A stretch of DNA of 64,000 nt, from positions 992,001 to 1,056,000 of the forward strand of contig OX337232.1 in assembly GCA_946965045.2 (NCBI GenBank). Direction: 5' to 3'. This stretch comes from Epithemia pelagica (Eukaryota > Protista > Bacillariophyta). The notes beneath the pieces were generated by a model, which was not told the origin of the DNA, searched no databases, and saw nothing but the letters and a program-made list of their open reading frames with translations. This document shows, in pieces, positions 8,830 through 34,479 of this stretch. The translations under genes and the position numbers were made by a program. Numbering within the stretch: position 1 is the stretch's first letter; each line of letters opens with the position of its first letter.

Positions 8830-8891
8830 TTATCTCCAAAGAAAAAGGAACTCCTACAAACCATCTTTTCAAGCATATCAACGCAATTTCT

Positions 8892-12600: not shown

Positions 12601-14805
12601 AATGGACCCGACGAAGATGAAGGAGCGCATCATACACAAGAGTCTCAGGATGAAGATGAAGGAGCGAACGACTATGACGAGCATAGTGATGAAGACGGCG
12701 ATGGTGAAGCAACCGCTATGTCCGAGGACGACATGCCCCAACACGAGTACAATTTGAGGAGCGACCGGACACGCTCCTACAGCCACAGACTTGACCACCA
12801 AATGGACACCGCGGACGGTAGCACATCATACATGCATATACAATTTCTCCAACGTGCGATCCGTCACGCAACAACCAACGTGAACGAACGGAAACCAATC
12901 CATTCCTTGGTAGCCCACTTCATATTCACCCAAATGTCTGCCCAAGCAGGCATCAAGAAACATGGTCAAAAAGCCATAGACGCACTTCTCAAGGAATTCA
13001 CACAATTAGACAATCAAGATACATTCGATCCCCAGGACGCATCAAAGCTTACGGCGCAACAGAAAAAAGCAGCCCTCAGATCAGTCAATGTGATCAAAGA
13101 GAAACGCTGTGGCAAGATCAAAGGACGATCCTGCGCGGACGGACGGTCCCAGCGGCCACACTACGATAAAAGTGAGACTGCTTCGCCAGCCCTGTCAACA
13201 GACACCCTGATCATGTCACTGATCATCGACGCGATTGAACGACGGAAAGTCATCACCGCTGACATCGCTGGGGCATACCTTAATGCTTTTATGCGCGATT
13301 ACGTGTTAATGAAGCTCACCGGTGATGTAGTGGACATCTTCTGCCAGATCGACGAGAAATACAAAAAGTTCGTCGTTATGGAAGGAAAGACCAAAGTACT
13401 CTACGTACGACTCAACAAAGCACTGTATGGATGCGTTCAATCTGCATTACTGTGGTACGAGCTGTTCTCCACAACACTGAAAGAGATGGGTTTCGAACTA
13501 AACCCGTACGACCCATGCGTGGCCAACAAAATGATCAACGGACGCCAATGCACTGTAACCTGGTACGTGGACGATCTAAAAGCATCGCACGTGGAAGAGA
13601 AGGTAATCGAAGATGTCGTGGCAGCAATCGAAGCAAAATTCGGGAAGATGTCGGTATGTAGAGGAAAAGAGCACACCTATTTGGGAATGAAAATTACAAT
13701 CAACGACAATGGCACAGTCAGCATTATCATGCCACAATACATCGACGAAGCAATCGACATGTTCGGCGAGAATGTCACACAAGGAGCATCAACGCCTGCG
13801 AGGAAAGGACTATTCACAATCAAGAAGAATTCACCGATACTCAGCAAGGAAAAGAAGGACAAATTTCACAGTATCGTGGCAAAATTACTCTACCTGTCAC
13901 AACGTGCCCGTATAGACATCCAAACGGCCATCGCGTTCCTGTGCACCCGAGTTGCCAAATGCACCGTCGACGATTGGGCCAAATTGAAACGAGTACTCCA
14001 ATATCTGTATGCTACCAAAGAATTGGAATACATTGTTGGAGCAGACGATGTACCCCATCTCAAGACATGGGTCGACGCATCATTTGCCGTACATGACGAC
14101 ATGCGCAGCCACACAGGCGGTGTAATGTCCCTTGGGCGAGGTGCTATCATCGCAAAATCAAGAAAGCAGAAGCTCAACACCAAGAGCTCGACCGAAGCCG
14201 AGGTTGTGGGTGCAAGTGACTACCTCCCAAACACGATATGGGCCAAACGATTCCTCGAGGCCCAAGGATATGAAATAGCAAGCACAAAATTCGCACAGGA
14301 CAACCAGAGCGCCATCAAACTAGAGAAAAACGGAAGAGCTTCAGCGGGGAAGCAGTCGCGCCATGTGGATATCAGATATTTTTTCATAAAAGACCGAATC
14401 AAACAAGAAAATATCGACATCCATTACTGCCCAACGGAGGAAATGTTGGCAGATTTTTACACAAAACCACTACAAGGGAGTCTTTTTATCAAGTTCAGAG
14501 ACGTATTACTCGGACACAAGCCCATCGATTCCCTGCAAGGCTCCCCGTGCGACTCCTCGACTCATGAGGAGCGTGTTGGAAATAATGACGAAAACGGAAA
14601 AATGATCCACGAGTCCTCAGAGCCACCCGGCGACCAAATTGAGACAATGACGGGAACTACTTATCGAAACAGTCACGAACAATCACGCGAGCAAGAAGGT
14701 AAGCGCGTTACGTTCGCTGACGTGGTAAAATACGGAAAACCAAAGACGAGCGAGGCGAAAAAGATGAATGCTCATTCTTTGGAGATAATCAAGAAAGTAA
14801 AGTAA
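9568..14805 (+). CDS. Gag-Pol polyprotein of copia 1
   Basis: First ATG at 9568. RGG box, CCHC knuckle (CFHCQGPGHYASQCP), protease WVLLDSQST, integrase D-D-E (CADNF, ADNEF, QVERSIR), RT (DIAGAYL, KALYG, YVDD) and RNase H (WVDASF, STEAEV, QDNQSA, ADFYTKPL). Confidence 0.96.
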   Translation: MSSSSASNPSSQDGAPSSPGTTPEGRGAGGPGRGGRGRGRGRGRGGRGGRGSRGGHTSSNAFKGNTEGMNGHVFQVFHECNDKRQFTRTLEALEEHFAKTFKHAGDMVVLTRDLKNPSVQEPADLPDEETSRLKIAIFEKQVAAYVTRCEILKSNLQAAYAIIWGQCSEAMKAKLQGLEKYETSRLACDCAWLLTQIKGIRHKFEEKRYGYASLNDAYTNFYLHRQQPDEPLSDYLHQFKENIDVLEHYGGSVGVDKGSQDLIVKYLDPDVITTSETKKRMSRDRALAIQFLKGADKKRFGNLLIELENQFTRGTDQYPVDVTAAYGMLVSYRGPRQPQNQQQGQSSTSNGLQFAQTTTAPVPGLDGILHEAIICFHCQGPGHYASQCPHRTDNNEAAAGVTMLQSHGPVHNFTFLHFDCCFSQSRHVAIPDSWVLLDSQSTVSVFRNATLLQNIRPAASPLTVYTNGGSQISRLVGDIPNFGEVWFNPQSLANILSLAAVRQRCRVTMDTAGASAIAVHRKDGSVMLFKESPMGLYYFDVNDPTNSINSPSAPYLFLNSATGYSPREVEGADRARTLYRQLGRPSQRDFLDALANNVVQNCPVTPEDAKRALKIYGPDPATIKGKTVKRPTPAAPQVVPTDIPTKIKNEHRRVTICADNFYVQGHIFCHTISKHLHFRTVAAISNRRKATLEKEIKDVINMYHARGFEVTDFHADNEFAPIQQRILPVLSNIVAADDHVGQVERSIRTIKERVRALVHGLPYRRYPSLLVREIVAHAVRTLNQLPSRKGVSTTMSPRKIVTGLPDPDFNNMRIEFGHYAQIFEERRRTNTTAPRTIGAIALNPTGNTQGSYYFLSLDTGARVTRQQWTELPITQAVIDRVEELAEQQDQPLIDGELVFEWAPNMPIIDDNNEVPNDNDDLLNDDESDGELEEGEEETDDGNSDDSDPNENDVESSSDEPPASDEDDDDEPPMVSTTDDEDNDDDNDNDDDHGEIEEEEGAHSEMDEDEGANGPDEDEGAHHTQESQDEDEGANDYDEHSDEDGDGEATAMSEDDMPQHEYNLRSDRTRSYSHRLDHQMDTADGSTSYMHIQFLQRAIRHATTNVNERKPIHSLVAHFIFTQMSAQAGIKKHGQKAIDALLKEFTQLDNQDTFDPQDASKLTAQQKKAALRSVNVIKEKRCGKIKGRSCADGRSQRPHYDKSETASPALSTDTLIMSLIIDAIERRKVITADIAGAYLNAFMRDYVLMKLTGDVVDIFCQIDEKYKKFVVMEGKTKVLYVRLNKALYGCVQSALLWYELFSTTLKEMGFELNPYDPCVANKMINGRQCTVTWYVDDLKASHVEEKVIEDVVAAIEAKFGKMSVCRGKEHTYLGMKITINDNGTVSIIMPQYIDEAIDMFGENVTQGASTPARKGLFTIKKNSPILSKEKKDKFHSIVAKLLYLSQRARIDIQTAIAFLCTRVAKCTVDDWAKLKRVLQYLYATKELEYIVGADDVPHLKTWVDASFAVHDDMRSHTGGVMSLGRGAIIAKSRKQKLNTKSSTEAEVVGASDYLPNTIWAKRFLEAQGYEIASTKFAQDNQSAIKLEKNGRASAGKQSRHVDIRYFFIKDRIKQENIDIHYCPTEEMLADFYTKPLQGSLFIKFRDVLLGHKPIDSLQGSPCDSSTHEERVGNNDENGKMIHESSEPPGDQIETMTGTTYRNSHEQSREQEGKRVTFADVVKYGKPKTSEAKKMNAHSLEIIKKVK

Positions 14806-14867
14806 AATTACGTTTTACATCTACGACGATAGCGACGAAGCTGACGGCATCCTTGCATCGTCCAACA
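14574..14867 (+). repeat. 3' LTR of copia 1
   Basis: Direct repeat of 8536-8829, followed by the GGTTC TSD. Confidence 0.97.
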
Positions 14868-16015
14868 GGTTCTTCATCCACGGTCTCCCAGGGCTTCCCA
14901 ATGAACCTCTTGCTACCGATATTCTCTTCCAATGCATACTGCTCTCGTACATTAAGTCCTTTGGTCCACGGGTACTCCTTAGCTTCCGACGGGGCCAGCC
15001 AGTAATCAACCTTTCGATATGTAGGGTAGAAACGGTTGTCGAAGATTTTGTATACAGTTGTCTTATCTTGAAAGGCAATGTTGTAGTTCTTCCTCTGCTC
15101 CCATACTTCGTCCGTCGGCTGCTGTCTGCTCAAATGCTCGGCGCAGTTAAGGTAGCGGACAATCCCTTTGCAGCTATCCATAACTGCTTCCGTAATATCC
15201 TCTCCTAATTTGCAATCGTAAATCTCGCGCCACAGAAGGCCCATCTTTACGTCGTTGTTTTTCTGCGACTGGTCGCCAACCTTGTCGAAGAGAAAGGCTT
15301 CCTGCACAATCTGCAGACGTAGACTCTTGTCCTTCGGAGTTCGATCGTAGTGAAGCCATAGAAGAATCATATGCGTGTTTGATTGACGAATCAAGCGTGC
15401 GTATTTGAAGGCCTGCTGTATTTTCCCGCAAACCATTTCTTCATTCTCGCCCGTTACAGTAAAGTCTGCCCCCTTCTTCTGATTCTTTCGCCAATTCTTG
15501 CTGACACTCATGCGCAACTTGTCTGAAAGATCCGTTTTTCGGACATGAGGAACTGTATTAAGGGCGTCCATCATATCCTTGGCTATCTCCTTTGTCGTAT
15601 CTTCGTCCTCCGTAGGCATACTTTTGTTTTTCTGGTCGCCATAATATTCCAACAGACCCATACCAACGGGGTGGACTAGAAGCGTCCCTCTTCGCTTTAC
15701 ATTTTCATAGAAAGATGCAGCAGTGCTGCTCTTGGCTATACTACTACTGCGCTCTGCCATTGTTGTTTTGTGATGAAGCCCCTTTTTTTTATTGACTTTC
15801 AATTTTGCATTGTGGCGAAGAATCTGCAAAAATTGCAACCACTGTCATTCACGACCAGGACTCACCCTCCGCTAAGGGGGTAGCTTCCGTTCTATTAAGG
15901 GGGAGGGGTGCCCTTTTCCTACACTCATAACTCATGTATTGCCGACACAACTTCCTCTCCTCATTCAAGCGCATTTGAGACAGAGGATTACACCAAAGTC
16001 CGTATCATCAAAATC

Positions 16016-16733
16016 ATGACGAATCCCACAGACCCAGACCTTGCTGAAACCACTGAAATACAGGTATGTCGCTATATGATTGACTGACGAAGTGATCCTT
16101 GCTATACGACATGGGTCTAAGACACCGAGATGGGAGCCGAAACTGCGCTTTCCTGCAGAACGTGACAGGAATTGGGAAGCACCACGGGGGCGGATAAAGA
16201 GAAGAAGAAAACAAGAACGGAAACTGAAAATTGAACGATTGCTGTCCAATGTCTTTTGAGTTGTATCTCACCTGTCACTTCCTCATTTTAACATTTGTTT
16301 AGGTGCAACTGCAACAGTGCCTTGAACGAAGCAAGAAAACGTGGACCGGTTTGTTCACCGGAATACCAGTCGCTTCCAATGGAATCAGTTTTCGGCAGCC
16401 TCTTTGTGGGCCAATGCCATTTTGTTTGCTGCCGCTGAAATCTCTTTGCATGCGTTTGTGGAAGCTGCTTCAGCGGCAGCAAACAAAATGGGATTGGCCC
16501 ACAAAGAGGCGGGGGACAAAGTTGTGGAAGCTGCAACGAAACTTGAAAACGGAATGGTGGAAGCTGCAACGAAACTTGAAAACGGAATGGTGGAAGCTGC
16601 AAAATGCGTCGCACTGGCCTGTGTAGTGGCCACTGTCATCAGCACAGCACCTTCGTGGGATGGCCTCATCCTTTTCTTTGTCGCAATTGGCTTGTTGTTC
16701 GTAGTCGCTGGACGGCGGTCCTTCATTTCATAA
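16016..16733 (+). pseudogene. Small two-exon coiled-coil/TM gene, copy A, frameshifted by an internal inverted duplication
   Basis: Exon 1 at 16016-16063, GT...AG intron, exon 2 from 16303, homologous to 33210-33974. A fold-back insert at ~16389-16468 moves the TM C-terminus into another frame. There is also a 30-nt tandem duplication at ~16524-16590. Confidence 0.65.
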
Positions 16734-16879
16734 TCCCGCAATGGGCTCGAACATATGGGTGGGAAGGGAACACGAGCCACCTTGGAAGCTCCTGAATTGC
16801 GTCGGCCGGATTGGATACGGTCGACGCACACCTGTCCGCGCTTCTTGATTCATCCGTACGCCCTTACGCTTGGAACGTG

Positions 16880-17300
16880 ATCGACCGAATTGGACTCTGT
16901 CGACAAACATCCATTTTTGCGGCATATGAGACGATTCCTCTACTTTCTTGGAGCATGTCTTGAACACACGTCCCTGTAGGTAGAGTCTCATAAAATATAG
17001 CATAGAGATTCAAACATGACCACAAAGAGGAACTTGCGTGCTACAGACATCCCGATATCTCGTGCACAACAAATTCCACCACTACGACTACGACGAATAG
17101 AATCCAAGCTCCTAGGATAAAGTTGGATCGGTTTCCAAGTTTTGCAAGTGATTTTCCATGCATCCAACGCAATGAAAATAACCACCAAAAGGTAACGTTC
17201 CATCCCCGAAAATAAAAAGTCCTGAATGACGTCTCAATACCACTACTTGGTTTAGGCATCGTCTCATTGGATCTGTAGTACTTCCAGTGAAACATGTCCC
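16880..17300 (-). repeat. Dispersed ~430-bp module (4 copies: here, ~34070-34470 minus, ~57790-58240 plus, ~62470-62990 plus)
   Basis: Shared anchors include TGTTTCACTNGAAGTACTA, CCTAAACCAAGTAGTGGTATT, GCATGGAAAATCAC and GTGGAATTTGTT. Reading frames differ between copies. Confidence 0.75.
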
Positions 17301-17309
17301 GCCCACTCT

Positions 17310-17990
17310 GGAGAAGGAGGATGGACCAGTCAGATTTAGAACAAGATTTCCAGTCCCACTACCATGCGTCATTCCAATCAAACTGTGCGGTCGCTAGGTG
17401 TCCGAGACGTACATACACCACCATCCCATGACGATAACGAAGCCGAGAGGGCGTCATCATGCTAGTCGATACATTCCCGGCATGGTGGTGACAGTCTTGG
17501 TTGTTTTGCTTCTCGCGGGTCTCGTGTTGGTGGCCTATTTCGTGGGATGGATCATGGCTGCCCAAGGTTTGGTCTTTTGTATTGTATCCGCAGCTTTATC
17601 ACCGCTCTTAACAGCCTTGTATGTCCTTTCCCAGAAACAAAACAGCAACAACGACGACGACCAGCCCAAGAGACGGAGGAAGAAGCCAGTTGACGACCCT
17701 TGCAATATACGACTTGGGAATCCTTCAACGACGGTTCACTAACGCACCATTTCGGGTATGGATGCCCCAGTCAATTGTTGGAGCCTGCAAGACAATGACA
17801 ACCCCTTTGATGTCTCTCATTGCGCAATACCATGCATTTGTTAGATTTTGCAGATCAATCCAGCGTGAACAGACGTTTGCCGCTTGTTTCAATGTAACAA
17901 TGAGCAAGATACTGCCATGTATACAAGCGTTTGACTTGCTAGTTTTCATGTAAGCAATCAACTTTATATCTTCAATTATTCTTGACTTTT
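17310..17990 (+). pseudogene. 5'-truncated diverged copy of the 3' half of the 6744-7424 membrane-protein gene
   Basis: Matches ~7030-7700, starting at TGGAGAAGGAGGATGG.CCAGTCAGATTTAGAACAAGATTTCCAGTC. No start region is present. Confidence 0.75.
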
Positions 17991-18075
17991 TCAGGGCTTA
18001 AACTCGTCATCACAAATGCTAGTCACGTATTGATTCATGGGCGAAATACTCTTGTGATGTAGTTGTATCATAAGT

Positions 18076-21000
18076 CTAATCGGACGACGACCCAAACAGA
18101 CCACGGAAGGCGGTCGCGGCCACAAAGGCCAGGCCTCCATAAACCAGATTTCGACGCATGTTCGCATCCATACCTTGGCCATTTTCGTTGTCAGCGTTGT
18201 CTTTATCAGCAATGGGAACTGGAAGATTGTCAAAGGTACCAGTGTATTCCTCAGCATACAATTGTCCGAATTCCGATTGTTCCAGTCGCTCTCGTTCTTC
18301 CTTGAGCTTTTGTCGTTTGTTGCGTACCGCCTTGAGGGCGTCGCTGGTAATGACCCGAACTTGATCAGCTTCTTCTTTCGTCGTGCCACTGGTCATCCTT
18401 GGGGTGGTGGGGGATACCATCTGGTCATTTTCTTGGCGCAATACGCGCACCTTGAGTAGCTTGGCACGGCTTGTAATGGATTCATCGTCAACCGTGACAG
18501 CTGCCGCGGCTGCCACAAGGGCCTTGATGATTTCGGACGATTCCTTGACGTCTTCGGGTGCCGCATTCTTGGGAACATGGTCCATAAAGAGCGACTTGTC
18601 CAATTCAAAACGAGATTCCTCGTCTGGGGCGCTTTCCAGGTCCAGGGACTCCTCTTCTTCTGGTGCCAAGGAAATCGAGGAATCCATTTCTTCCATCTTC
18701 AACTCTTCCCCAACAACCTTATTGGTTACATCGGACAAAACGGTTACAGATTCGGATTCCACAGTTTCATCTTCCATCTGGACCCTCTTTTCCAATGCGG
18801 CAAATAGCGACTCGTCGTGTGTTTCCAAAGAAAAGCTCGAATCTGTTTCTTCCACGATATCATTTTCCACACCAATTGTCTTGGTGGAATCGGACACGAC
18901 AGTGAAAGATTCGGATCCAAGAGCGTCTGCAACAGTCGTTTCAGACAAGGACATTGTCGTTTCTTCTTCTTCTTGTTGTTTGGAGTCAGGAGACACAATG
19001 TAGAAGTCGGCCGGCCGTTGAGAAGTCACGTCGTCGTTGACCGTTGTCCCTTCGACCACAGTAGCTGTGGCGTCCAGGGGCACTTCATCGTCTTGTTCGT
19101 CTTGGTTGTTACTGTGAGGTTGCGTTTCGAACGCAGCAGTACGGTCTGGCAAAGCCGTCAGTGCGCTCGTTTCGGCCGTCGTTGCTGCAACAAGATTGTG
19201 TGGTGGTTGTTCCTCAATCGTCGGCGCTTCCGTGGCCAGCGTGTCTTTAACGGCTTCGGTTTTTAAAAATTCTTGAACAAACTGCACCACTGGATCCTCG
19301 GCAGTTTCCTCCTCGGCCTTAATGTCGAGGATGGTTGGGGGAGTCGTCCTTGGTTCCTCCAGGTTGTTGGTGCTGGGTTCTGACGCCATGGGATCGAAAC
19401 TGCTCGAAGGAGTAGTCGTACCCTTGGGATCAGCCTCGTCTTCTTTCGGACGATGAAGGGCCGTCCATTCTTGCGCCAAGTCTTGCGCCGAGACGGTGGG
19501 CACTGGATTGCTCGTTTCCGGTTTGACGGGTGGTGGTGCTGGTATGGCCTGTGACAAGGCCAAGGCGGTCTGACTCATTCCACTATCATCACTACTACTG
19601 TCATCCGTATCCTTTTCCGACGAGGATGCAAACGAATCGGCCGTCGTCGTCTGTTTCTCGATACCAGAGGCCTGTTGTTGTAGATCTGTGGTGCGTTTCG
19701 TGGACTCCCAGGCGGCAGCCTCTTGCACATTCTTGGTGGTGGTTGGTTCTTGTGGCACGGCGGTCGACAGTGCCTCGTTCCGAATACTAGTAGTATGATC
19801 CGAATTGCTGGATTCGGTCGTTTCCACGTCCACCTCTTGATGGCGTCGCGTCCAATCCTGCGCCAGTTCTTGAATGGTAGCCGGATCGGAACGAGGGGTG
19901 GACGGTTGTTGTTGTTGTTGTTGTTGGAGCTGTTGATGTTGTTGCTGTTTCTTTTCATGCTCGTGTAACCATTCTTGGGAGACCTTGTGATTGGGTTTCA
20001 TTTCCTCGACCGACGGTGGATGCAACTGGGCCCACGCTTGATTCCAAAAGGACGTGGAAAAAGTCGTTGTGGTTGTCGTCGTGGAGTGGGTGCTGGTCGA
20101 TTTCTTCATGTCTCGAGGAGGGGGCAGGACAACTGCATCATTTTGTGGAGAAGGAGGCACACTCAATTCGACGTTGGGTGGTGAGGAAGATGGTACGACT
20201 GGTACACTCGTGGTCGAGGTGGTGGTTGCCTGGGAGGATGGAACCATGGTATTGTCCGAGTCGTCCTGCTTCGTCGTCGTTGTCTCGGACTCAAGGACCG
20301 TCAGTTCCTTGTTGGACTCTGATTTTCTCTTGGGAATGGAATCGGCCAAGGATTGCTTGTTGGGCTGCTGGACTTCAATGAAGGGTGGGTGCAACGAGGC
20401 CCATTGCGAGGCCGAGTCTTGCAAAATGTGCTGTTGCTCTTCGTTTGGTGGTGGTTCTTGGATGGAAACGGGCGAGGAAGAAGAAAAGAGTGGCAAGGGG
20501 TTGGGTTCTTGCAGTTGCGAACTCGACGAAATGTCAAAGTAGTCCAAGGCTTGTTGTTCCAAATCGTCCAAATCGGGTTCCATGCTGGTTCACCCCGTAA
20601 ACGACGTCGAGTCCTGAGGAGGAGGAGTGGTGATATCGTCCTTGTTAATATCCTTGGTGTCATCGTCCCTGTCGTGGTCCCTTGTCGGCGTTGTCATCTT
20701 CCAGGGGTCATGTTCCGTTTGCTTCTTGACGGCATTGATTTCGTCTTGCGATCTTGGTGGTGGTGGTCGACGCTGTCGACTCAAGGCCGCCCAGGTTTCG
20801 GGCATTTGCGCCATGGACGCCGGAGACGATTCGGAACGGAATAGGGATTCTTGTTGTCCTGGGTGTCGTAATTGTCATTGCTGCCCATCCTGGGTAAAGT
20901 GGTGGCGGGTTCCTCCGACGGGGACAACGACCCGGTGGTACTTCTACTCGTACTACTACTGCGACTCCACAATTGCGAGGGATAGACCCAGGGAGGCGAC

Positions 21001-21280
21001 GACGCCATGTCCATGGGGGATGACGGTTGCTCCGTGTCGTCGGTGGCGTCCTCGGGTGCTGCTGTGGTATCACGCAATCGACCCGTCGGGACCTTCATTT
21101 GGTGCATGGCCGTCATGGGAGATGACGATGTTGTCGTTGTCGATATGCTTGTGCGGGACATGGTCGAATAGGACCTCGCCGACAACATCATTTGAGAGGG
21201 ATACACCATGGCCGCTTCGGACGAGGAGGGAAAGGAGGAAATGTGCACGTGTTGGTTGGAACTGCCTCGAGGAGGACGAT
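18076..21280 (-). pseudogene. Paralog A of the long low-complexity plastid-targeted gene (35256-39011)
   Basis: The 835-aa 3' ORF is nearly identical to paralog B. It has a TGG>TGA nonsense change at 20590-20592, a frameshift near 20800, and has lost the signal-peptide region at the duplication junction. Confidence 0.85.
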
Positions 21281-21539
21281 GATCGAGACTGCCGTCAAGT
21301 CTTCAAGAGCTCCAACGGGTTCATTAGAATCAACAGTCGCCTTGTTGGACACAATGCACAAACGGGAAAAACAAAGTCAGGCTATTCTGCATTTCCGCCA
21401 GGTGCTGAAAGGCACAGAGCTATCAATTTCCTCCATCAGATTTCTTTTCGGTCGAATGCGACAATCGCGTCTTCTGGTTCTTTTTGCCAGGACAGCCTAT
21501 CCCAATAATATCGTTGTAGATTTCCCTCTTGGCCGCCGA

Positions 21540-22489
21540 TAGTATAACTAAGTTTATTGCTGAGGGTGGACGACGAGAAGTTGGGGACGACGAGGGGCAG
21601 TAACGACGAGAAGGGCTATAGCGACGAGGAGTGGACTGCCCTCCGTAAATCCGCGAAAGCGGATTGGAGGGGCAGTCCACGACGAGAAGCTATGGCCCGA
21701 CGAGAAGTTACGCCCCGAGAAGTGCCCCAACGACGAGGAGTCACCCGGGGCAATAAACTTATGTATGCTTCCTTTGTCGCGAGGAGTCGTGCCAAACGCG
21801 CGGCGTGACACTAGGTAATCTTTCATTGTTCCTAGTTCCTAAATGACCCCGTCAGTTAAGTGATTTCATCGGAGGACATCGGATGAAGTTTAACGCTTGT
21901 TTTCTTAAATACAATCGTCTCTCATTTATTACATGCCAATCAAACTCCGAGGCGTCCTTCTTGTATACGAGTAAATACAATACGAGTAGAGAAATCTAAG
22001 TACGTGCTACTTACAAGTAGAGTCATTGTCCCCCAACCCTCAACCAGAACCACTGATAACACGACACACGACACACGACACGACACAAGAAACAACACAC
22101 ATACTCGTAGAGCACTCATCATGAACACAATGGGAAAGTCTACCATGGTGAGTCCTCCTCTGGCCTCCAGGAGGATGCATTCTTGTCCTCTGTGTCTGTT
22201 GTTGGTGTTGGTGGATTGTTGCGTGTTGCGAACCTCTGTCCATTCCTGTCCTTTTTGCCTCGTCCTTTGGCTCGTCTGCTTTTGGTTCCTCTTTTCGTTT
22301 CGGTCTTTGTCTTTAGTGCGCCGCGCTAGTTTTTCTGTAGGTGCTACTTTTTGTCGGTGCTACTTTTTCTTTTCCCGGGCTATTTTACATGTATACACTA
22401 GAATAAAAAATCGTCGTAGAATAAATTTTTGGGCTTATCTATTTTGGGGTGTGAGTAGGGAAAGGCACGATGAGGAGTGATAAAGGTAG
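21540..22489. mobile_element. Unclassified non-coding insertion (~945 bp) without terminal inverted repeats
   Basis: Absent from paralog A, where the site reads GGCCGCC-TC-TAGCAATC. Here it is flanked by TAG at 21540-21542 and 22487-22489. No convincing ORF; long fold-back at the left end. Confidence 0.8.
21541..21769 (+). other. Long rod-like fold-back with periodic symmetric internal loops
   Basis: Nested helices can be paired by hand, separated by GACGAG(A/G)A loops on both arms, with an apical GAAA loop (see findings). Confidence 0.85.
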
Positions 22490-22702
22490 CAATCTAATAC
22501 ACAAGTCTGAATGTTTCGTAATGAATGCTTCAAAGCGTTGGACCGGTTTTGCAGCCTCTTCTCTCAATTCATTCAATTCATTGACAAAATCTCCATAAAC
22601 ATGCAAATGAGCTCCATCGACAGGTATATACATAGCCATGGTTCCAGCAAGATCTTTCCAATCATGCTCAAACATCATGGTTTCGTCTGGGCCGCCAGCT
22701 CT

Positions 22703-23468
22703 TAGTAGAACTCTCACCAAAAATCATCGGTTAGGTTCGGCACCTCATCGGTTAGTCGAGTCCCGTGGCTTCAAACATCACCTACATCACCTACATCCAC
22801 ACTACATACCTAGCTTCGCGCTAGCTCAACCTATATTTCGGTCGCATATACCAAAAAGTGAGAACAGATTGACAAACGTGCTATCAAGAATCAACTTTGG
22901 TCTTGATATCGCATCAACGGATGATCATCCGTTGAACATCCGAGCCTGACCTATGCCCTAAGCGTGCGCGCCCAAATTCGTCAAGATGCGCGCAAGAACT
23001 ATCCGAGCGTGGCGATCATGTATCCGACCCAACGGTCTAAGTACACAAGGCACGAATCACGATCACGCGAGACCATATCATTGTTCCCACTATTTCAAGA
23101 TTGCAAACAAGAACGCGCCAACAAAACTACATATACCAACTTTAGCCAAGAATCGTTGAGGCTGTATATGATATACAAGCACATATACATGTTATATACC
23201 TCACATACATCAACTCCAACCATTCCAGTCCTATCACCGCCAAGAACCTATTTCACACGATCGACAACAAGAATGGAAACCTCACACACCAAACCTAGTA
23301 GTAAGCTCACAATCATTAACATTACCATATCATCACGTCTTCAGTGTCCTGACTATCCCTACGATAGAGCCCTTGGGTTTCCTTTGTTCTCTGACCCGTG
23401 GAGAACCTTGGTATCAGTTGGTAATCGATTGTGGCTCTTCTAGAGCGTGTACTGACGGAATTCTACTA
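22703..23468 (+). repeat. 5' LTR of copia 2
   Basis: Direct repeat of 30947-31712 with 8-bp inverted termini. Confidence 0.96.
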
Positions 23469-23484
23469 GATTAACAGTCTCACC
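23469..23484 (+). other. Putative primer-binding site GATTAACAGTCTCACC
   Basis: Abuts the LTR. Its reverse complement GGTGAGA-CTGTTAA-TC reads as a tRNA-Asn(GTT) anticodon arm. Confidence 0.65.
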
Positions 23485-23507
23485 TGTCTCATTTCCCCGA
23501 AGTTTTC

Positions 23508-24295
23508 ATGTCCAGTGACTCCAATACTCCTGTCCGTCGGAACTACAACGCTTTCCAGCAGAGTGGTGACCCAACACAGCAGATTGCCGTCCACCCTGGC
23601 GAATTCCTCATCGAGACGCCCTCTAACTCCCCGGAGAAGGCTAGCGCGCCTAATCCGTTCCAGACTCCCGATCAAGTCGTCCCTCCGCCGTCCGACCCGA
23701 ATCGCCCGCCGAACACCCTTGCACGCCGACCGAGTACACCTCCTCGCCCAAACCCAACTCGCACCCGACGTACGAGCCGTCTCATCAACGCGCACCTCCG
23801 TTACTTCCGCGAGCCATCCGAGTATCAGAGCGACCCGGACCACATCCGTTCGACGAGTCCGTCCAACCCGTCGTCGACCTAGAGGATATCCAACGACTCC
23901 TAGACTTGCTATACCAATCTCCAAGCTACCGATACATAGCGACGACCCTATCGACCACCCCATCAGGCTGCCTTCGGGTACGCTTCCTTACTTTCCAGCG
24001 TCCGGTCAATTACTTCCATACCATTTGGGTCGTGAACAAGACTAACCAACCTCTTCCTACCTTGACTACCCGTCTCGACGACTACGTTGGTTTCATCCAC
24101 GTTATCAAGTTGCACCAGGACTTCCGTGCCACTATCTTCCCTCTACTCACCCAACCAGTGAACCACCTAGTTGAGGACCACAACGGCAACGAAGAGTTAC
24201 TGAGTCTCCGATTCAACTTGATTACCACAACGAGCCCAGAAGTGACCACGTTTAAGGCCATACGTAAGGGAGCAGTATATATACTGATCCCATAA
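23508..24295 (+). CDS. Possible extra upstream ORF of copia 2 in two overlapping frames (23508-23882 and 23645-24295)
   Basis: A Pro-rich ATG ORF overlaps a 217-codon ATG-less open frame in the -1 register. In-frame C CCA AAC heptamer at 23747-23753. Confidence 0.4.
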
Positions 24296-25282
24296 ATTCG
24301 AGCAGTATATACACTCCTCCCATAACTTTGAAGACATCTACTAATTGGAATATAGACGCCATTGTCTTTTTCACTTGTAATTCTAATAGTTTGTGGAATT
24401 TTGAACATTTTCATATATCATAGTCTACACTGATTTTGAAATTATAACAGTCGTTTCGTGTATCAAAACTTGGATGATTTTTGTGATTTTCTCATCCCAT
24501 CGACCATGGCCCAACTTTGAGCAGTACGCACACACTCAATATCCAACAGCAAATGTCAAGACCTTCCATTCTGGTGTAAAATAATATGAACTATAGGACT
24601 TTGTCTTTATTTGTGATTTGACAGCACCTCTGTTGAGCATTCGGCAATTCCCTCTCTCAGACCATGTTTTTGCCTGCTTCACAGCATTGACCCTTTTTCG
24701 ACACATTGAACCTTTCCTTGGTCAACTTTCGCCTCCACATACCATCTGTCTTGATCAATTGACTTTCCTTCATCCATTCTGACCTGGTTTGGCATCATTG
24801 GAAGATGATCCATGCCATTTTCATTGTCCGCCCTCATTGTCTCTCATTGTCATCGAGGATGGCCGCTCAAGTTCGAGAAAAGCGACTAAAATGACAAAAA
24901 ATTCTCACTATGAATAAATTTGTACTCGAAATTAAAACTGGGAGTTTTCAAACCGTGTTAAGATGGGAGTAGTTTATGGGAGTCAAAGCACTGATCCCAT
25001 ATTTTTTATGGGAGTAGTTTATTTTCTACTCCGTTACCCTTAAAACCCGTTCCTTACGTATGGCGTTAAGTAATTTTAAGTAGTTTTCACACCAAACCAG
25101 AGACAAAACCGAGTTCCGCACATCCGGGTTACCTTTCGGACATCACATCACACGTGGACATACGTGGCACATCCGGGTTCACAAGGCACACCACACATCC
25201 GGGTTACAAGTTTTAACTAAAGTTTTCGACTAAGACATCACAGGACACATATCAACATATCTTATCACCAAGTCAAGCAATC

Positions 25283-26782
25283 ATGGAACCAACTACACCG
25301 ACCACACCAGAGTTCAACACCAATCAAAGTATATCTGATCAAGAAGTCTTTGATCATATTACTCAGGTGTTGTTCAACTTTTCCAAGGAAAGGGTCGATG
25401 TACTCGTGAAATGGATGCACCATCATGCTTTTGATGATATCCTTAGTATCATTGAACATATGGCAATTGACCCTGAGAAGAACATGGATAGTATGACAAA
25501 ATACAAGTCAGGAAAACAAATGCACGACCTACATGTCAATACAAGCCAGCAGATCAAGTTGCTTGCCCATTGGTTCCGACAAACGAGTATCGACATTCAG
25601 GGTATACCTTCCAAGGCAACCTGGATGAATCTGACCAAGGTAGAATTTGATCTATGGAGGATAAACACTGACTTTCGCTCCGGAAGCCCTATCAATGACC
25701 CAGTATCACCTATGAAATCTCCATCCCATTCGACGTCACCCAAATTGTTTAGTACTACTTCTGCTGCATCACAGTCCCAACTGGACCTTACCGCATTCAA
25801 GAAGGGAACCAAGCGTGACGCTATGGCATATGAAACATTCAAGGATGAACGATACTACGACACGTTCTGGAGGACTTTCAAGACCACAGCAAAAGCCCAA
25901 GGTTTATCTAATGTTCTTGACTTCCGATACAAGCCGCCGACGAATGATACGTATGCAACAGAACTTTTCCAAGAGCAACAAATCTTCCTATACTCCGTCC
26001 TTGTGCGCATCATCCAGACTGATCAAGGAAGAGCTTATGTTCGCGAACATGAACATGATGAAGACGCACGAGCAGTGTTACAGAAGCTTCACACATTGCA
26101 TACGAAGTCAGACTTAGCGAAACGAGAGGTCTTACAATTAACCAATTACATCTCCAACCTTTGCCTCGATGATACATGGCGTGGATCATCACGTCAATTC
26201 TTGCTTCATTTCCAAGACAAACAACGTTTACTCGATAACCTTGTTGATCTCTCTGATCGCATACCTGATCACACCAGGATGACGTTTCTTATGCAAGCTG
26301 TCGAGAAGGTACCTGACCTTCGCAGAGTTAAAATCTTGGACAACGTCGTCAACACGAAGTCTGGAGCAAAGTCTTTATGTTATAAGTCGTACTTCTCCAT
26401 TTTGATGGACGCAGCATATGACCATGATCAAGTCACGCAATCTTCTGCAACTGGTCGTCGTCGTAGTGTCAAGCAACACGAGCAACACGAAACACAACAT
26501 GATATTGAGGGATCCCTTCAGGAAGACTATGCATATCAGATAAACAATACCAATGTCCAAGATGATAACACGGCATCTCCAAAAGCCAGTCTTCCTCGTG
26601 ACCTATGGTTTAAACTTCCTGAGGATGCTCGCAAGATGATTGTTGAGTATAACAAGAACGTGCAAGCTTCTACTCCGAGTCCAAGAAAAGTACAGCAACA
26701 CTCCCTTGACATTGATCCTGAACCTGATCCTGACCCTGGTCAAGATGTTTTTGATGACCTGGACAACCCCACATATCCATAG
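25283..26782 (+). CDS. Gag of copia 2
   Basis: 499-aa ORF directly upstream of and in frame with pol, inside the LTR pair. Confidence 0.85.
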   Translation: MEPTTPTTPEFNTNQSISDQEVFDHITQVLFNFSKERVDVLVKWMHHHAFDDILSIIEHMAIDPEKNMDSMTKYKSGKQMHDLHVNTSQQIKLLAHWFRQTSIDIQGIPSKATWMNLTKVEFDLWRINTDFRSGSPINDPVSPMKSPSHSTSPKLFSTTSAASQSQLDLTAFKKGTKRDAMAYETFKDERYYDTFWRTFKTTAKAQGLSNVLDFRYKPPTNDTYATELFQEQQIFLYSVLVRIIQTDQGRAYVREHEHDEDARAVLQKLHTLHTKSDLAKREVLQLTNYISNLCLDDTWRGSSRQFLLHFQDKQRLLDNLVDLSDRIPDHTRMTFLMQAVEKVPDLRRVKILDNVVNTKSGAKSLCYKSYFSILMDAAYDHDQVTQSSATGRRRSVKQHEQHETQHDIEGSLQEDYAYQINNTNVQDDNTASPKASLPRDLWFKLPEDARKMIVEYNKNVQASTPSPRKVQQHSLDIDPEPDPDPGQDVFDDLDNPTYP

Positions 26783-26821
26783 GATGATTCCGATCCAGCC
26801 ACCCATCTCATCCATCAAGCA

Positions 26822-29800
26822 ATGACGTCAACCGACATCAATCACCCAGCTTCTGATTTGTCTAATGTTCTATCCAATGCCGCATCCAAGACGAGTAAGA
26901 AAATTAGTTTCAAACCGAATGAGCACAAGCAGAAGGTCCACATGACTCAATATATGTTCTCTCGAAAGTCGACTTATACTGGGAATCAACTCATTGATCG
27001 TGGTGCCAATGGTGGTTTAGCCGGAGCTGATATGCGTATCCTTTCCAAGACAGGTCGTAACATCACGATTGTGGGAATCGACAACCACAAACTTACTGGT
27101 CTCCCCATTGTCACTTGTGCTGCCAAGTTTGAAACTAATGATGGACCAATCGTTGGCATCTTCAACGAATATGCATACTATGGAAAAGGACAGTCTATAC
27201 ATGCGCCTTGTCAATTGGAACATTATGGGCTATCTGTGGATGAACGTTCTGTCAAGGTGGATGGAAAGCAACGTATCACTACCCTTGATGGACGTGCTTT
27301 ACCTCTATGTATCAAGGATGGACTTGCCTTTATCCACTCATTAGGTATCCCTTCTGATGATGACATGGACCGATTGCCGCAAATCATCTTTACTTCGCCA
27401 TCTACTTGGGACCCCTCTGTTCTTGACCATACTCATTCAGATCCACAGCATGATGCTTCTACTACATGGCATCAGGTTGCGACCGATGGCAGTATGGCAC
27501 CTTATCCATATGACACGTATGGGGAGTACACTGATCGTGTTGTCTGCAATCTCAATCTTCTCCTTGACCTTCCTTATGACCACGGGCCCGACAACACCAC
27601 ATATTTCTCTATCTATGCTGATGCTAATGGTGAAGACCCAACCCTTCAACATGCATCTGTCCATCGTCGTTTTGTGGAAGAACATGATTGGAAACAATTT
27701 CGTCCCTTCTTTGGTTGGCAATCCGAGGAAGTTATTGCCGATACTTTCAAGCATACTACCCGACATGCTAATGTGACTTTTGACTGTGACACTCTCAAGA
27801 AACATTTCAAGGCACGCAACCCTATCCTGAATCTACCACGTCGTCATGAACCCGTTGCTGCCGATTCGATCTTTTCTGATACACCTGCTGTTGATCATGG
27901 TGGAAAGGTGGCTCAAATTTTTGTTGGCCGCGATACTCTTGTCACTGATATTTACGGTATCAAGTCTACCAAGCAATTTGTGAACACTCTTCAAGACAAT
28001 ATACGCATGCGAGGTGTCATGGAGACACTCATTAGTGATGGGGGTTCATCTCTTATTTCCCATAAGGTTAAGGATATCCTTCGCACCTTGCTCATCGGGG
28101 AGTATCGCTCTGAACCATACCACCAGCATCAGAACAAAGCCGAGAATCGTTATCAGACCGTTAAACGAATGACGAATGCTATCATGAATGCAACTGGATG
28201 CCCGGCCAATGTTTGGTTACTTTGCCTTGAATATGTCTGTGACTTATTGAATCATTCTTCTTCACATGCACACTCTGGACGGACTCATATTGAGGCTCTC
28301 ACCGGTCACCCTCCCGACATTTCGCACCTCCTGTTCTTTCCCTTCTGGGATGAAGTCTACTATTGTGTTGACCCCTCCGAACCGTCGTCTGGTCCCTACC
28401 CTTCTTCGACCGATGAGAAACTTGGCCATTGGGTTGGTTTTGCTCACAACGTTGGTGATGCTTTTACATGGAAGATTTTGTCTGCTGACAACCATATCCT
28501 CTACCGTTCCGCTGTTCGCCGTGTCGCTTCCACTACACCCAACCTTCGTGTGGATCGACCTTCAGGGGAGACGTCTCCGAAAGATGACACTGATAAGCAG
28601 GCTGACACTGTCTTCATTCGCAGTAAAAGTGAAGATCCATCCAAACCAATGCCTACAATCGATTACGAAAACATGATAGGACGCACTTTCCTATGCGACA
28701 CTGAAGAAAATGGGGAGCGTCATCGAGCACGCGTTGTCAAACGAGTTATAGATCTTATGAAAGAATCACTCAAGCAAGAAGAACGCATCAAGTACATCTA
28801 CCGCAAGACAAATTCTGACGTTGATGAAATGATCTCTTATAACCAGTTGATGGAGTATATTGAGAGGGACAATCAAGCGCAGACCTCGGGAGATAATTTG
28901 TTCCGTTTCAGGGATGTTATTGCACATCAAGGCCCACTGTCTTCAACTGACCCGGATTATAAGGGGAGTAAGTATAACTTGCTTGTGGATTGGGAAACTG
29001 GGGAGACAACCTATGAACCACTCTCCCTTATTGCCAACGACGACCCAATCACCGTTGCCATATATGGAAAGAAGCATGGGCTCCTCAACGACCCAGGATG
29101 GAAACACCTGAAACGCTACGTCAAGACGAGTAAACGCCTGATACGTGCTGCAAAACAATCAAGGATCAAACAAGTACGTCGATCAGTCAAGTATAAGTTT
29201 GGATTCCAAGTCCCTCGAGATTACGCCGAGGCTGTCAATCTTGACAAACAAAATGGTACCACAAGGTGGCAAGACGCAACTGAATTGGAACTGTCTCAGA
29301 TACAATCATATGAGACATTCAAGGACCATGGGAAGGCCATCTTCACAAATGGCAAGGTATCAAATGCACCTGAGGGATATCAAAAGATTCGAGTGCATCT
29401 CATTTTTGATGTGAAACATGATGGTAGACACAAGGCACGACTTGTTGCAGATGGACACTTGACGAAGGAACCTGTGGAAACGATCTACTCTGGAGTTGTT
29501 TCTATTCGCAACCTACGAATTGCTTTATTCCTTGGATCTCTGAACGATCTAGAAGTATGGGGAGCAGACATTGGGAATGCGTATCTTGAAGCATTGACTG
29601 GGGAGAAGTTATATATTGTGGCAGGACCCGAGTTCAAGGAGCTAGAAGGTCACATCCTCATCATCTACAAGGCCCTCTATGGTCTCAAATCTTCAGGCGC
29701 ACGATGGCATGATGTCCTTTTTGACGTCCTCACCGATATGGGTTTCTCACCAAGCAAGGCAGATCCTGACATTTGGATGAGAAAAGCACCTGGGGAGGAT

Positions 29801-30949
29801 TGCTACGAATATATCGCCGTATATGTGGATGACTTAGCCATCATAGCTACTGACCCTGGAAACATTTGCAAAGTCTTCAAGGAAAAGTACAACTTCAAGC
29901 TTAAGGGAGATGGACCTATTGACTATCACCTGGGATGCCGGTACACCAAGGACCCTGACGGAACCCTAGTCTCTGATCCACGCCGATACATTAGCAAAAT
30001 GATGGACACCTTCGAACGTATCTTCAAAGAGAAACCCAAGAAGGCTAAAACCCCTCTCATTGCTGGTGATCACCCGGAATTGGACGACACCGAACTCCTT
30101 GATGAAGAAGGTACACAGCACTTCCAGACCTTGATTGGACAGCTTCAGTGGGTGATTACAATTGGTCGCTTTGATGTTTTTACTGCTACGATGACCCTTT
30201 CCAGGTTCCGCGCAGCTCCAAGACAGGGACATCTCAACAGAGCTAAACGCATCTATGGATACCTTTTCAATCTTTCTGATGGTGCAATCAGATTCCGAAT
30301 CGGAGAGCCCGATTTCTCAAGCATTCCAAGTCAAGACTTTGATTGGAGTCGTACGGTCTATTCAGATGCCAAGGAATACATCCCTCATGATTGCCCAGAA
30401 CCACTTGGACGATATGTGACGACAACGCACTATGTTGATGCTAACCTTATGCACGACATGATCACAGGAAAGTCTGTAACAGCCATCCTGCATCTCTTGA
30501 ATGGGACACCAATTGATTGGTACAGCAAACGACAGAGCACTGTGGAAACGGCAACATATGGATCAGAATTTGTGGCAGCAAGGACAGCAGTCGACCAAAT
30601 CACTGAATTACGGCATTCACTTTGTTACCTTGGAGTACCAATCAGGGATCGCAGTTATCTGTTTGGAGACAATCGATCTGTGGTTGTTAACGCAACAATG
30701 CCTCATTCTATCTTGTCCAAGAGACATCATCTCCTTTCATATCACCGGGTACGAGAAGCGATAGCAGCGCAATACGTTGCATTCTATTGGAAGGATGGGA
30801 AGACCAACCCTGCCGACATCCTCAGCAAGCATTGGGAATTTGCAACTATTTGGCCTCTACTCAAGCCCCTATTGTTTTGGAGAGGAGAAGTTCAAGATCT
30901 CTACGAATCCAGCGATGACAAGGCTGAACCAACGAGCTGTGGGGAGTAG
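26822..30949 (+). CDS. Pol of copia 2 (protease, integrase, RT, RNase H)
   Basis: LIDRGANGG; integrase ADSIF/ISDGG/KAENR; RT DIGNAYL, KALYGLK, YVDD; RNase H YVDANL, TYGSEFVA, GDNRSV, NPADILSK. Confidence 0.95.
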   Translation: MTSTDINHPASDLSNVLSNAASKTSKKISFKPNEHKQKVHMTQYMFSRKSTYTGNQLIDRGANGGLAGADMRILSKTGRNITIVGIDNHKLTGLPIVTCAAKFETNDGPIVGIFNEYAYYGKGQSIHAPCQLEHYGLSVDERSVKVDGKQRITTLDGRALPLCIKDGLAFIHSLGIPSDDDMDRLPQIIFTSPSTWDPSVLDHTHSDPQHDASTTWHQVATDGSMAPYPYDTYGEYTDRVVCNLNLLLDLPYDHGPDNTTYFSIYADANGEDPTLQHASVHRRFVEEHDWKQFRPFFGWQSEEVIADTFKHTTRHANVTFDCDTLKKHFKARNPILNLPRRHEPVAADSIFSDTPAVDHGGKVAQIFVGRDTLVTDIYGIKSTKQFVNTLQDNIRMRGVMETLISDGGSSLISHKVKDILRTLLIGEYRSEPYHQHQNKAENRYQTVKRMTNAIMNATGCPANVWLLCLEYVCDLLNHSSSHAHSGRTHIEALTGHPPDISHLLFFPFWDEVYYCVDPSEPSSGPYPSSTDEKLGHWVGFAHNVGDAFTWKILSADNHILYRSAVRRVASTTPNLRVDRPSGETSPKDDTDKQADTVFIRSKSEDPSKPMPTIDYENMIGRTFLCDTEENGERHRARVVKRVIDLMKESLKQEERIKYIYRKTNSDVDEMISYNQLMEYIERDNQAQTSGDNLFRFRDVIAHQGPLSSTDPDYKGSKYNLLVDWETGETTYEPLSLIANDDPITVAIYGKKHGLLNDPGWKHLKRYVKTSKRLIRAAKQSRIKQVRRSVKYKFGFQVPRDYAEAVNLDKQNGTTRWQDATELELSQIQSYETFKDHGKAIFTNGKVSNAPEGYQKIRVHLIFDVKHDGRHKARLVADGHLTKEPVETIYSGVVSIRNLRIALFLGSLNDLEVWGADIGNAYLEALTGEKLYIVAGPEFKELEGHILIIYKALYGLKSSGARWHDVLFDVLTDMGFSPSKADPDIWMRKAPGEDCYEYIAVYVDDLAIIATDPGNICKVFKEKYNFKLKGDGPIDYHLGCRYTKDPDGTLVSDPRRYISKMMDTFERIFKEKPKKAKTPLIAGDHPELDDTELLDEEGTQHFQTLIGQLQWVITIGRFDVFTATMTLSRFRAAPRQGHLNRAKRIYGYLFNLSDGAIRFRIGEPDFSSIPSQDFDWSRTVYSDAKEYIPHDCPEPLGRYVTTTHYVDANLMHDMITGKSVTAILHLLNGTPIDWYSKRQSTVETATYGSEFVAARTAVDQITELRHSLCYLGVPIRDRSYLFGDNRSVVVNATMPHSILSKRHHLLSYHRVREAIAAQYVAFYWKDGKTNPADILSKHWEFATIWPLLKPLLFWRGEVQDLYESSDDKAEPTSCGE

Positions 30950-33974: not shown

Positions 33975-34479
33975 ATTGCGTCGGCCGGATTGGATACGGT
34001 CGACGCACACCTGTCCGCGCTTCTTGATTCATCCGTACGCCCTTACGCTTGGAACGTGATCGACCGAATTGGACTCTGTCGACAAACATCCATTTTTGCG
34101 GCATATGAGACGATTCCTCTACTTTCTTGGAGCATGTCTTGAACACACGTCCCTGTAGGTAGAGTCTCATAAAATATAGCATAGAGATTCAAACATGACC
34201 ACAAAGAGGAACTTGCGTGCTACAGACATCCCGATATCTCGTGCACAACAAATTCCACCACTACTACTACGACGAATAGAATCCAAGCTCGTAGGATAAA
34301 GTTGGATCGGTTTCCAATTTTTGCAAGTGATTTTCCATGCATCCAACGCAATGAAAATAACCACCAAAAGGTAACGTTCCATCCCCGAAAATAAAAAGTC
34401 CTGAATGACGTCTCAATACCACTACTTGGTTTAGGCATCGTCTCATTGGATCTGTAGTACTCCAGTGAAACATGTCCCG

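Follow-up and report, generated by a model that had tools for sequence, protein, structure and literature searches.

The window, that is, the whole stretch of 64,000 nucleotides analysed here, appears eukaryotic, with few long ORFs and with copia-type elements. It holds two Ty1/copia-type elements (RVT_2, zinc knuckle) and genes for a pheophorbide-a-oxygenase-like Rieske protein, a ZIP transporter and an epimerase; no tRNA genes were found in it. Comparison of the window with itself revealed a tandem duplication of about 7 kb, whose units we call X and Y. X comprises 7814-8535, a copia-type element and 14868-21281. Y comprises 21371-21537, 949 extra bases, 22487-22702, a copia-type element and 31712-38582. 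When 20001-24000 was searched against the window with blastn, 21371-21537 aligned with 7814-7979 and 22487-22702 with 7982-8188, and the sequence between them had no match. A minus-strand kinase-like reading frame is continuous in X and broken in Y by the insert. Since the frame is interrupted in Y and continuous in X, the difference is a 944-bp insertion with flanking TAGs and not a deletion in X (Table 1). The paralogous ORF at 31658-32953 shows weak Kdo/RIO-type matches.

The empty paralogous site reads ...CTC TAG CAATCC, with a single TAG at 7982-7984. At the filled site, the left junction is ...CGA TAG TATAAC and the right junction ...AAAGG TAG CAATCT. The repeat flanking the insert is 3 bp long (TAG), whereas both copia-type neighbours, which were analysed for bounds, LTR identity and target duplications, have 5-bp duplications. 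A repeat search detected no terminal inverted or direct repeats in the 944-bp unit, and its family is present in a single copy. Two readings of the insert were rejected. As an intron or introner, it would read GT..AG on the plus strand, yet the interrupted gene is on the minus strand, where GT..AG is absent. As an LTR-type derivative, suggested by first bases that resemble the start of the neighbouring copia-type LTR, it has no matching 3' end and a 3-bp instead of a 5-bp duplication, and the likeness of its start is partly due to the letters of the target TAG. Of the features of TRIM, LARD and retrozyme elements, terminal direct repeats, a 5-bp duplication and a hammerhead are absent from the unit.

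The left end of the insert carries a structured segment, the rod. Neither 5.8 billion clusters nor 1.84 billion representatives contained a relative of the rod ORFs on either strand, and a metagenome scan by a back-translated rod ORF retrieved none. An interior ORF of 68 aa matched only itself in the protein collection, as a single copy, and the unit ORFs had no Pfam or PHROG matches. The periodicity of the rod is not accounted for by a coding frame: a protein-coding repeat was rejected because the rod ORFs lack relatives in large protein collections and no frame is conserved.

Table 1. Position of the insert, its hairpin and the neighbouring features in the window
Feature	Position	Strand	Basis or opposing segment
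Left flank: kinase-like pseudogene piece, unit Y of the tandem duplication, interrupted by the insert	21371-21539	-	blastn
Left TAG, common to target and unit junction; its AG paired within the rod	21540-21542	+	
Rod as first reported: H1-H6, four loop pairs, GAAA-capped apex	21541-21769	+	fold
Inserted unit, 944 bp, non-coding, rod at left end	21543-22486	+	blastn self-comparison, junction alignment
Loop 1, left arm GACGAGAA	21572-21579	+	opposite 21732-21739 (GACGAGGA)
Loop 2, short form, left arm GACGA	21589-21593	+	opposite 21717-21721 (GAGAA)
Loop 3, left arm GACGAGAA	21605-21612	+	opposite 21699-21706 (GACGAGAA)
Loop 4, left arm GACGAGGA	21623-21630	+	opposite 21681-21688 (GACGAGAA)
Apical hairpin ATCCGC-GAAA-GCGGAT	21649-21664	+	fold
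Right-arm extension: T, 10-nt helix strand (21771-80), GAGGA loop (21781-85), 8-nt helix strand (21786-93)	21770-21793	+	
CA-rich microsatellite-like stretch within the unit	22059-22101	+	
Lower left arm, formed by the unit's 3' terminus: 8 nt (22464-71), GAGGA loop (22472-76), 10 nt (22477-86)	22464-22486	+	
Right TAG; its AG able to form the same pairs with 21768-69	22487-22489	+	
Right flank: next piece of the same pseudogene copy, up to the copia-type element	22490-22702	-	
Ty1/copia-type LTR element; 767-bp LTRs 99.7% identical; 5-bp duplication GCTCT	22703-31713	+	

A purine-loop hairpin with the unit boundary in its lower stem

The rod had been proposed from manual pairing, and its six helices (H1-H6) and four drawn loop pairs are all present in the MFE fold of the plus strand at 21541-21769. 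As RNA, this segment folds at -134.3 kcal/mol, compared with -65.6 +/- 4.0 for 200 shuffles (z -17.1). A structure walk along the plus strand counted 79 Watson-Crick and 4 G.U pairs. Three of the internal loops are 8x8, with GACGAGRA on either arm, and one is a short 5x5 loop, GACGA/GAGAA. Because the loop word is identical on both arms, each loop is two-fold symmetric, with a C-G pair, tandem G.A, a G-C pair and purine-purine flanks. The window contains 24 copies of GACGAGRA, with 5.3 expected, and all six copies within the rod are on the plus strand. The complement of the rod is weaker as RNA (-105.2 kcal/mol, z -11.5), and DNA parameters rank the strands in the same way (plus strand -60.0, complement -53.4), in agreement with the plus-strand preference suggested previously. 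The G.U/G.T pairs and the GAAA cap suit RNA no less than DNA.

The extent first given for the rod was right in that 21541-21769 folds as drawn, but it is incomplete, as the stem extends below the reported base. The right arm continues beneath this base to 21793, and the left arm resumes at 22464-22486, the far end of the insert. When the insert was folded as is, 21771-80 paired with 22477-86, one base off the rod foot, with a symmetric loop and another helix beyond. Compared apart, as two pieces, the ends form a duplex of -30.5 kcal/mol, whereas random 35-mers of the window reach -15.9 +/- 4.5, with 14 out of 5000 equally good. This duplex comprises 8 bp (22464-71 with 21786-93), a 5x5 GAGGA/GAGGA loop, 10 bp and a T.T opposition, and it also includes the AG of TAG paired with the CT of 21768-69. 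A contiguous-helix test between the 3' end of the unit and the rod foot gave p about 0.002.

This pairing explains a degenerate ninth motif close to the unit's 3' terminus, which is the partner strand of the lower loop and has the same word on both arms. Since the last 23 bases of the insert pair just past the rod, the insert ends sit within the lower stem of the rod. The complete hairpin is composed of 22464-22486, TAG and 21543-21793. Its lower 5' arm contains the unit boundary. For the window unit, the two ends were compared as separate pieces, and the fold across a junction was taken only from a natural contig of the second family described below (L441).

A second family of units

A pattern scan of metagenomes retrieved at least one true relative, contig L158, among the 120 matches listed. 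Two L158 ORFs present in the protein collection led to three further contigs from other samples (L438, L439 and L441). L158 has the same opposed GACGAGRA loops, while every helix is different from those of the window rod, and its apex is GGGC-TTTA-GCCC. Its rod folds as RNA at -93.6 (z -8.4), compared with -70.3 for the complement, and the strand with the purine loops folds better than the complement in both families. BLAST detected no sequence shared by the two families beyond the loops. A likeness between their 3' ends amounts to an 8-mer, as expected by chance, and was rejected.

The longest ORF of the second family has 4, 6 and 6 substitutions over the three codon positions, and its single-sequence AlphaFold model reaches a pLDDT of 40. 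Together with the absence of Pfam and PHROG matches, these values leave the ORFs of this family unsupported as genes. The L158 ORFs of at least 40 aa span just part of the rod on the plus strand. In both families, the units are without supported coding capacity.

Selection on structure had been deduced from the window rod, and the second family bears this out by keeping the loops while all helices differ and by compensatory change within the family. One helix shows a double change of C-G to U-A and a change of U.G to C-G. In the foot region, a further double change, T-A to C-G, was read by hand from the alignment. One copy has lost its apex exactly between two loop words on opposite arms, leaving a shorter hairpin that is still symmetric, and thus shows a route by which rods can shrink.

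The second-family unit, which like the window unit carries the rod at its 5' end, measures 981 nt in L158 (28-1008) and 972 nt in L441. Left flanks differ between L158 and L438 and right flanks between L158 and L439, and the unit was seen with three different flanks. The break falls at a constant position of the unit, with AC on either side, and such an identical break position in independent insertions speaks against random breakage. The units of this family begin with TAATAG... and end with ...GTAGT between AC flanks; the window unit begins with TATAAC... and ends with ...ATAAAGG between TAG flanks. Contig L441 closes on itself, with an exact overlap of 112 nt and a single AC at the junction. 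This terminal overlap is compatible equally with a perfect tandem array or a circle. In L438, a full unit is followed head to tail by a second, diverged unit. Circle or tandem forms were seen in the second family only. Folded as is, L441 forms a stem that crosses the junction through an 11-bp helix, an extra CGAG-type loop pair and four more pairs. By hand counts, 9-11 nt separate the boundary from the lowest loop beneath it, and 29-30 nt separate it from the first full loop above it, in both families. The units of the two families have defined ends and occupy several insertion sites, and their cut is fixed relative to the loops.

These observations bear on two other explanations. The first is that the rod is the product of neutral repetitive DNA, a functionless palindromic satellite or tandem repeat whose loops come from repeat slippage. 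Direct repeats on both arms do recombine, as in the copy whose apex is gone exactly between loop words, and tandem copies exist. Nevertheless, mirror-complementary spacers between the direct repeats are kept in two families that share no helix sequence, compensatory change is present and the spacing from loop to boundary is conserved, so that a neutral origin seems extremely improbable. The second is a long hairpin RNA gene (an siRNA or miRNA precursor), with the insert as a mere duplicated gene fragment. A long, near-perfect hairpin on one strand is what such a gene would have. However, a Dicer substrate has no need of the same non-complementary word recurring on both arms with a period of 18 nt, the unit boundary splits the stem in two families, and units with defined ends are found at several insertion sites and in tandem or self-closing forms. 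We give this explanation hardly any credence.

A TAGTA-like word is found at both feet of the hairpin in both families, and the cut positions of the two families fall on different bases of it. The word could be the origin nonanucleotide of a circular Rep-encoding ssDNA replicon, of which the unit would be a fragment or satellite; the unit is self-closing and about 1 kb long, and its repeated words could be iterons. At 21540-21548, TAGTATAAC is one position off the canonical circovirus-type motif (PMC7468197). However, TAGTATAAC and its L158 equivalent miss by one position each of the four origin patterns listed in PMC7468197, namely NANTANTAN, NAKWRTTAC, TAWWDHWAN and TRAKATTRC. These patterns fix so few positions that near-matches are common, and the foot word forms part of a stem instead of occupying a loop of about 11 nt above about 11 bp of stem. 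Nicking of the nonanucleotide usually takes place between positions 7 and 8, and the unit boundary is elsewhere. No Rep gene was found in the scanned ORFs, and the IMG/VR scans contained no rods among the matches listed. Membership of the CRESS-type origins was rejected, as the word fits no published pattern exactly and lies in the paired rod foot, and derivation from such a replicon is in our view very unlikely.

Alternatively, the unit might have been copied into DNA from an RNA of about 1 kb that is circular or replicates by a rolling circle, in the manner of viroids, retrozymes or the Varkud satellite, or from a structured RNA gene. In this case, the rod would bring the two ends of the linear monomer together in a nicked helix so that they can be ligated, the loops would bind a replication or packaging protein, and DNA copies would be made by reverse transcription, for instance by the copia-type elements of the genome. 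The very stable RNA fold, the favoured plus strand, the four G.U pairs and the GAAA tetraloop are consistent with this route, as are the head-to-tail genomic copies and the reverse transcriptase genes nearby. The unit ends also lie side by side within a helix, which is the geometry of viroid and retrozyme processing. By hand reading, the diverged tandem copy differs from the others by A-to-G and T-to-C only (10/10). Such changes could mean editing of double-stranded RNA, but the presence of both types is impossible from one edited strand.

Searches of Rfam speak against an RNA route. The window had no match at the gathering score, and in 21300-22000 even a cut-off of E = 10 yielded nothing. 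For the remainder of the unit and for L158, L438, L439 and L441, natural junction included, only chance-level matches were obtained, with E values of 1.4-8.5, far below gathering. Covariance-model searches of both families therefore uphold the sequence-only reading in finding no known ribozyme or Rfam family, be it hammerhead, twister, HDV-like, Varkud or other. Neither a primer-binding site nor a polypurine tract, LTR or poly(A) was seen by eye, the rod-like portion makes up only about a quarter of the unit, and all data are DNA, from metagenomes and a 1.15-Mb contig. Taken together, the RNA route appears unlikely.

A proposed cut-and-join site and its relation to known elements

That the rod belongs to a non-autonomous mobile element had been one of the functions suggested for it, and this agrees with an insert that is missing from the paralogue, has no supported coding and has its cut-and-join point inside the rod in both families. 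A purely packaging role, also suggested, found no specific support. We lean slightly towards the view that the rod is the cis-acting cut-and-join site of a non-coding mobile unit of about 0.95-1 kb, which would exist as a circle or head-to-tail multimer. The site would be whole only with the two ends of the unit joined or held together. The strand with the purine loops would then form a hairpin about 280 nt long, interrupted by five or six internal loops that carry a GACGAGRA-type word on both arms. Each symmetric loop is a putative docking site for a dimeric protein supplied in trans.

According to this proposal, the unit would be cut in the lower stem, on its 5' arm, roughly one helical turn up from the lowest loop and with 29-30 nt between the cut and the first full loop above it. 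The opened unit would be joined to a target with which the cut site has 2-3 bases in common (TAG in the window, AC in the second family). These common bases would be present on both sides of an integrated copy and a single time in the joined form. The folded strand would probably be read as DNA, and an enzyme encoded elsewhere would cut the 5' arm and join it to the target. The preferred candidate is an HUH-type nickase (copy-and-paste, rolling-circle or peel-and-paste), since tandem multimers, copy-and-paste behaviour and strand-specific hairpins follow from HUH activity. The second choice would be a tyrosine recombinase acting on the folded strand, as at integron attC. We infer the binding of a protein, the DNA nature of the folded strand and the identity of the enzyme.

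No enzyme gene linked to either family was detected: Pfam searches of the scanned window ORFs gave copia-type reverse transcriptase only, and neither these ORFs nor those of the units had a Rep HUH (Y1) or tyrosine-recombinase match. Scans of IMG/VR with two- and three-loop patterns retrieved no rods among the matches listed, but in-frame acidic coding repeats only; one of these patterns used a 6-nt gap, equivalent to a 15-nt in-frame period. The three-loop pattern had 29 matches in 185,579 prokaryotic GTDB genomes, none of them a rod. A literature search for the loop word gave unrelated papers only.

For HUH enzymes and integron integrases, recognition depends on the shape of a folded single-strand hairpin (PMC3201880, PMC2727003). 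Integron cassettes resemble the units in being mobile, about 0.5-1 kb long and with a circular intermediate, and in carrying an imperfect palindrome, attC, that is read by shape as a folded strand, the correct fold coming from one strand only (PMC2727003). However, attC sites are bacterial, about 60-140 nt long, have few extrahelical bases and depend on an integrase-bearing platform, whereas the host of the units described here is eukaryote-like, their hairpin is about 280 nt long and contains five or six symmetric purine loops, and they have no linked integrase. The boundary of an integrated cassette splits the attC palindrome, and a very short sequence is shared at both boundaries. The context of an integron is absent from the window, which has copia-type elements, no tRNA genes and few long ORFs. 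The resemblance to attC, which by the same reasoning extends to phage attachment sites that fold as single strands, is an analogy and not membership.

The IS200/IS605 elements (HUH, Y1) have subterminal imperfect hairpins recognised on one strand, cleavage sites away from the hairpin that are set by pairing with foot-adjacent bases, a circular single-strand intermediate and no inverted terminal repeats (PMC3201880, PMC5027513, PMC6006769). They differ in being prokaryotic and in having two small hairpins, one per end, instead of one very long hairpin across the joined ends. No TnpA-like gene was found in the scanned ORFs.

The HUH transposons of eukaryotes include Replitrons and Helitron-like elements, both of which have small derivatives that are non-autonomous (PMC10288648, PMC11417382). 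Replitrons are copy-and-paste elements without inverted repeats that insert in one orientation directly 3' of RG, and the window insert follows ..TAG (PMC10288648). They have short terminal direct repeats, and a non-autonomous form of about 910 bp, Replitron-N1, is known (PMC10288648). The right end of the window unit, ..TAAAGG, equals six bases of the terminal repeat of Chlamydomonas Replitron-1, which could be due to chance (PMC10288648). The left end lacks the Replitron repeat, and the only repeated bases are TAG in the window and AC in the second family. At the right end of Replitrons only an 11-bp palindrome has been described, with no long rod or loop array (PMC10288648). Replitrons are present in several stramenopile classes, and none has been detected in diatoms (PMC10288648). 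The units could be non-autonomous partners of Replitrons.

Cryptons also lack inverted repeats, have a proposed extrachromosomal circle and are present in stramenopiles, CryptonS being found in oomycetes and a diatom (PMC3212892). Nevertheless, their repeats are of 4-6 bp (often TATGG in CryptonS), and no long hairpin has been described in them (PMC3212892). The direct repeats of the units are 2-3 bp long, with 3 bp in the window (TAG; 4/5 if GNTAG) and 2-3 bp in the second family (AC or TAC). Shared flanking bases of 2-3 nt, shorter than the 4-6 bp of Cryptons, could also reflect microhomology-mediated capture of a linear copy.

The rolling-circle Helitron-like elements of eukaryotes have a terminal stem-loop, are abundant as non-autonomous copies and also form tandem arrays. 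HLE1 elements start with 5' TC, end with 3' CTRR after a short hairpin and insert between A and T without duplication; HLE2 elements have terminal inverted repeats of 12-16 nt and a stem-loop close to one end and insert between T and T (PMC11417382). HLE1 ends (TC...CTRR) are absent on either strand in both families. Of the HLE2 features, the repeat search detected no inverted repeat between the unit ends, and the targets are TAG and AC. As none of the known families agrees with the units in all of its defining features, we describe functional analogies and do not file the units under any family. The proposed logic would resemble that of the folded-strand systems attC and IS200/IS605 and that of the rolling-circle Replitrons and Helitron-like elements, and a Crypton-type recombinase or an RNA circle might also be involved. 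The arrangement itself, with cutting and joining inside the lower stem of a hairpin, could not be matched to any described eukaryotic element.

The second family comes from estuary-type metagenomes, and one of its samples is sediment of the Columbia River estuary, rich in phytoplankton detritus (PMC6848030). This origin is compatible with an algal host, without being proof of one. We put forward tentatively, and with more doubt than confidence, that algae (probably diatoms or their relatives) may carry previously unrecognised, tiny non-coding mobile circles, or else the footprint of a new viroid-like RNA replicon. The sole conserved part of such circles would be a long single-strand hairpin of two-fold symmetric purine loops, read by an enzyme acting in trans that would cut and join within the stem. 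They would be a eukaryotic counterpart of the folded-strand sites of integrons, IS200/IS605 and filamentous phages and would add a structure-defined mobile element to eukaryotes. An element of this kind would be invisible to protein-based and repeat-library annotation, because only its fold and a word of 8 bases are conserved. A hairpin in which identical purine loops face each other, with a unit boundary in the lower stem, would provide a searchable descriptor with which elements, their partners and their hosts could be surveyed. In addition, the loop recurs at a fixed pitch as a compact non-Watson-Crick motif with two-fold symmetry, and as such is relevant to nucleic-acid structure and recognition.

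Tandem duplication and Ty1/copia-type elements

The 944-bp non-coding insert that begins with the rod lies inside the right-hand copy of a tandem segmental duplication of approximately 7 kb, which was delimited by comparing the window with itself. The two copies are 99–100% identical at their centre and only 81–92% identical at their margins, a difference that suggests either gene conversion or a partial re-duplication of recent date. The two copies have each been interrupted by a copia-type element of their own, and both elements, whose LTRs are nearly identical, are probably recent insertions. The LTRs of the right-hand element start with TAGTAG and end with CTACTA, instead of the usual TG..CA.

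Duplicated segments, repeats and ORFs in the window
Feature	Position	Strand	Details
Tandem duplication, ~7 kb	7814-8535 + 14868-21281 vs 21371-38582		
Ty1/copia-type LTR element 1	8536-14867		LTRs 100% identical over 294 bp; 5-bp duplication GGTTC
Ty1/copia-type LTR element 2	22703-31713		LTRs 99.7% identical over 767 bp; 5-bp duplication GCTCT
Inverted repeat, 51 nt	within 16389-16589		90% complementary; arms 29 nt apart
Low-complexity ORF	18076-20583	-	835 aa; Ser/Thr/Gln/Glu-rich; hydrophobic C-terminus
Low-complexity ORF	35256-39011	-	1251 aa; Ser/Thr/Gln/Glu-rich; hydrophobic C-terminus
Paralogous segment pair	47211-48091 / 61222-62101		
Paralogous segment pair	56778-58216 / 60210-62921		

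Other repeats and ORFs

The shorter of the two low-complexity ORFs is a duplicated copy of the longer one, with a diverged upstream portion, and neither matched any Pfam family. The inverted repeat is adjoined by three 33-nt tandem repeats, and the same arrangement recurs near position 33600, in the duplicated copy. Additional dispersed paralogous segments, 80–83% identical and partially overlapping the epimerase gene region, occupy the right half of the window.

Metagenome contigs

L438, a metagenome contig of the second rod family, carries two units head to tail. When the alignment was read by eye, all ten substitutions that distinguish positions 1-330, in its second, diverged unit, from the four other copies were A-to-G or T-to-C, most of them at TA dinucleotides. 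Editing or deamination within one lineage could be the source of these changes, which may have run in either direction.

Some GACGAG-containing arrays are of another build. In the AT-rich contig L141 (2300-2470), eight 16-nt tandem units, each composed of GACGAG and a self-complementary AACATGTTC-type spacer, fold into either a ladder of small hairpins or a single long stem; this array is no rod of the kind found in the window. Among the matches listed by the second metagenome scan, L153, L177 and L184 contain arrays of a 16-nt tandem repeat with GACGAG. This array is adjoined by a stretch complementary to the repeat in L153 and L177, and is followed in L184 by an array of one GC-rich word able to pair with it; all three are long repeat-against-repeat hairpins, unlike the rod in build.
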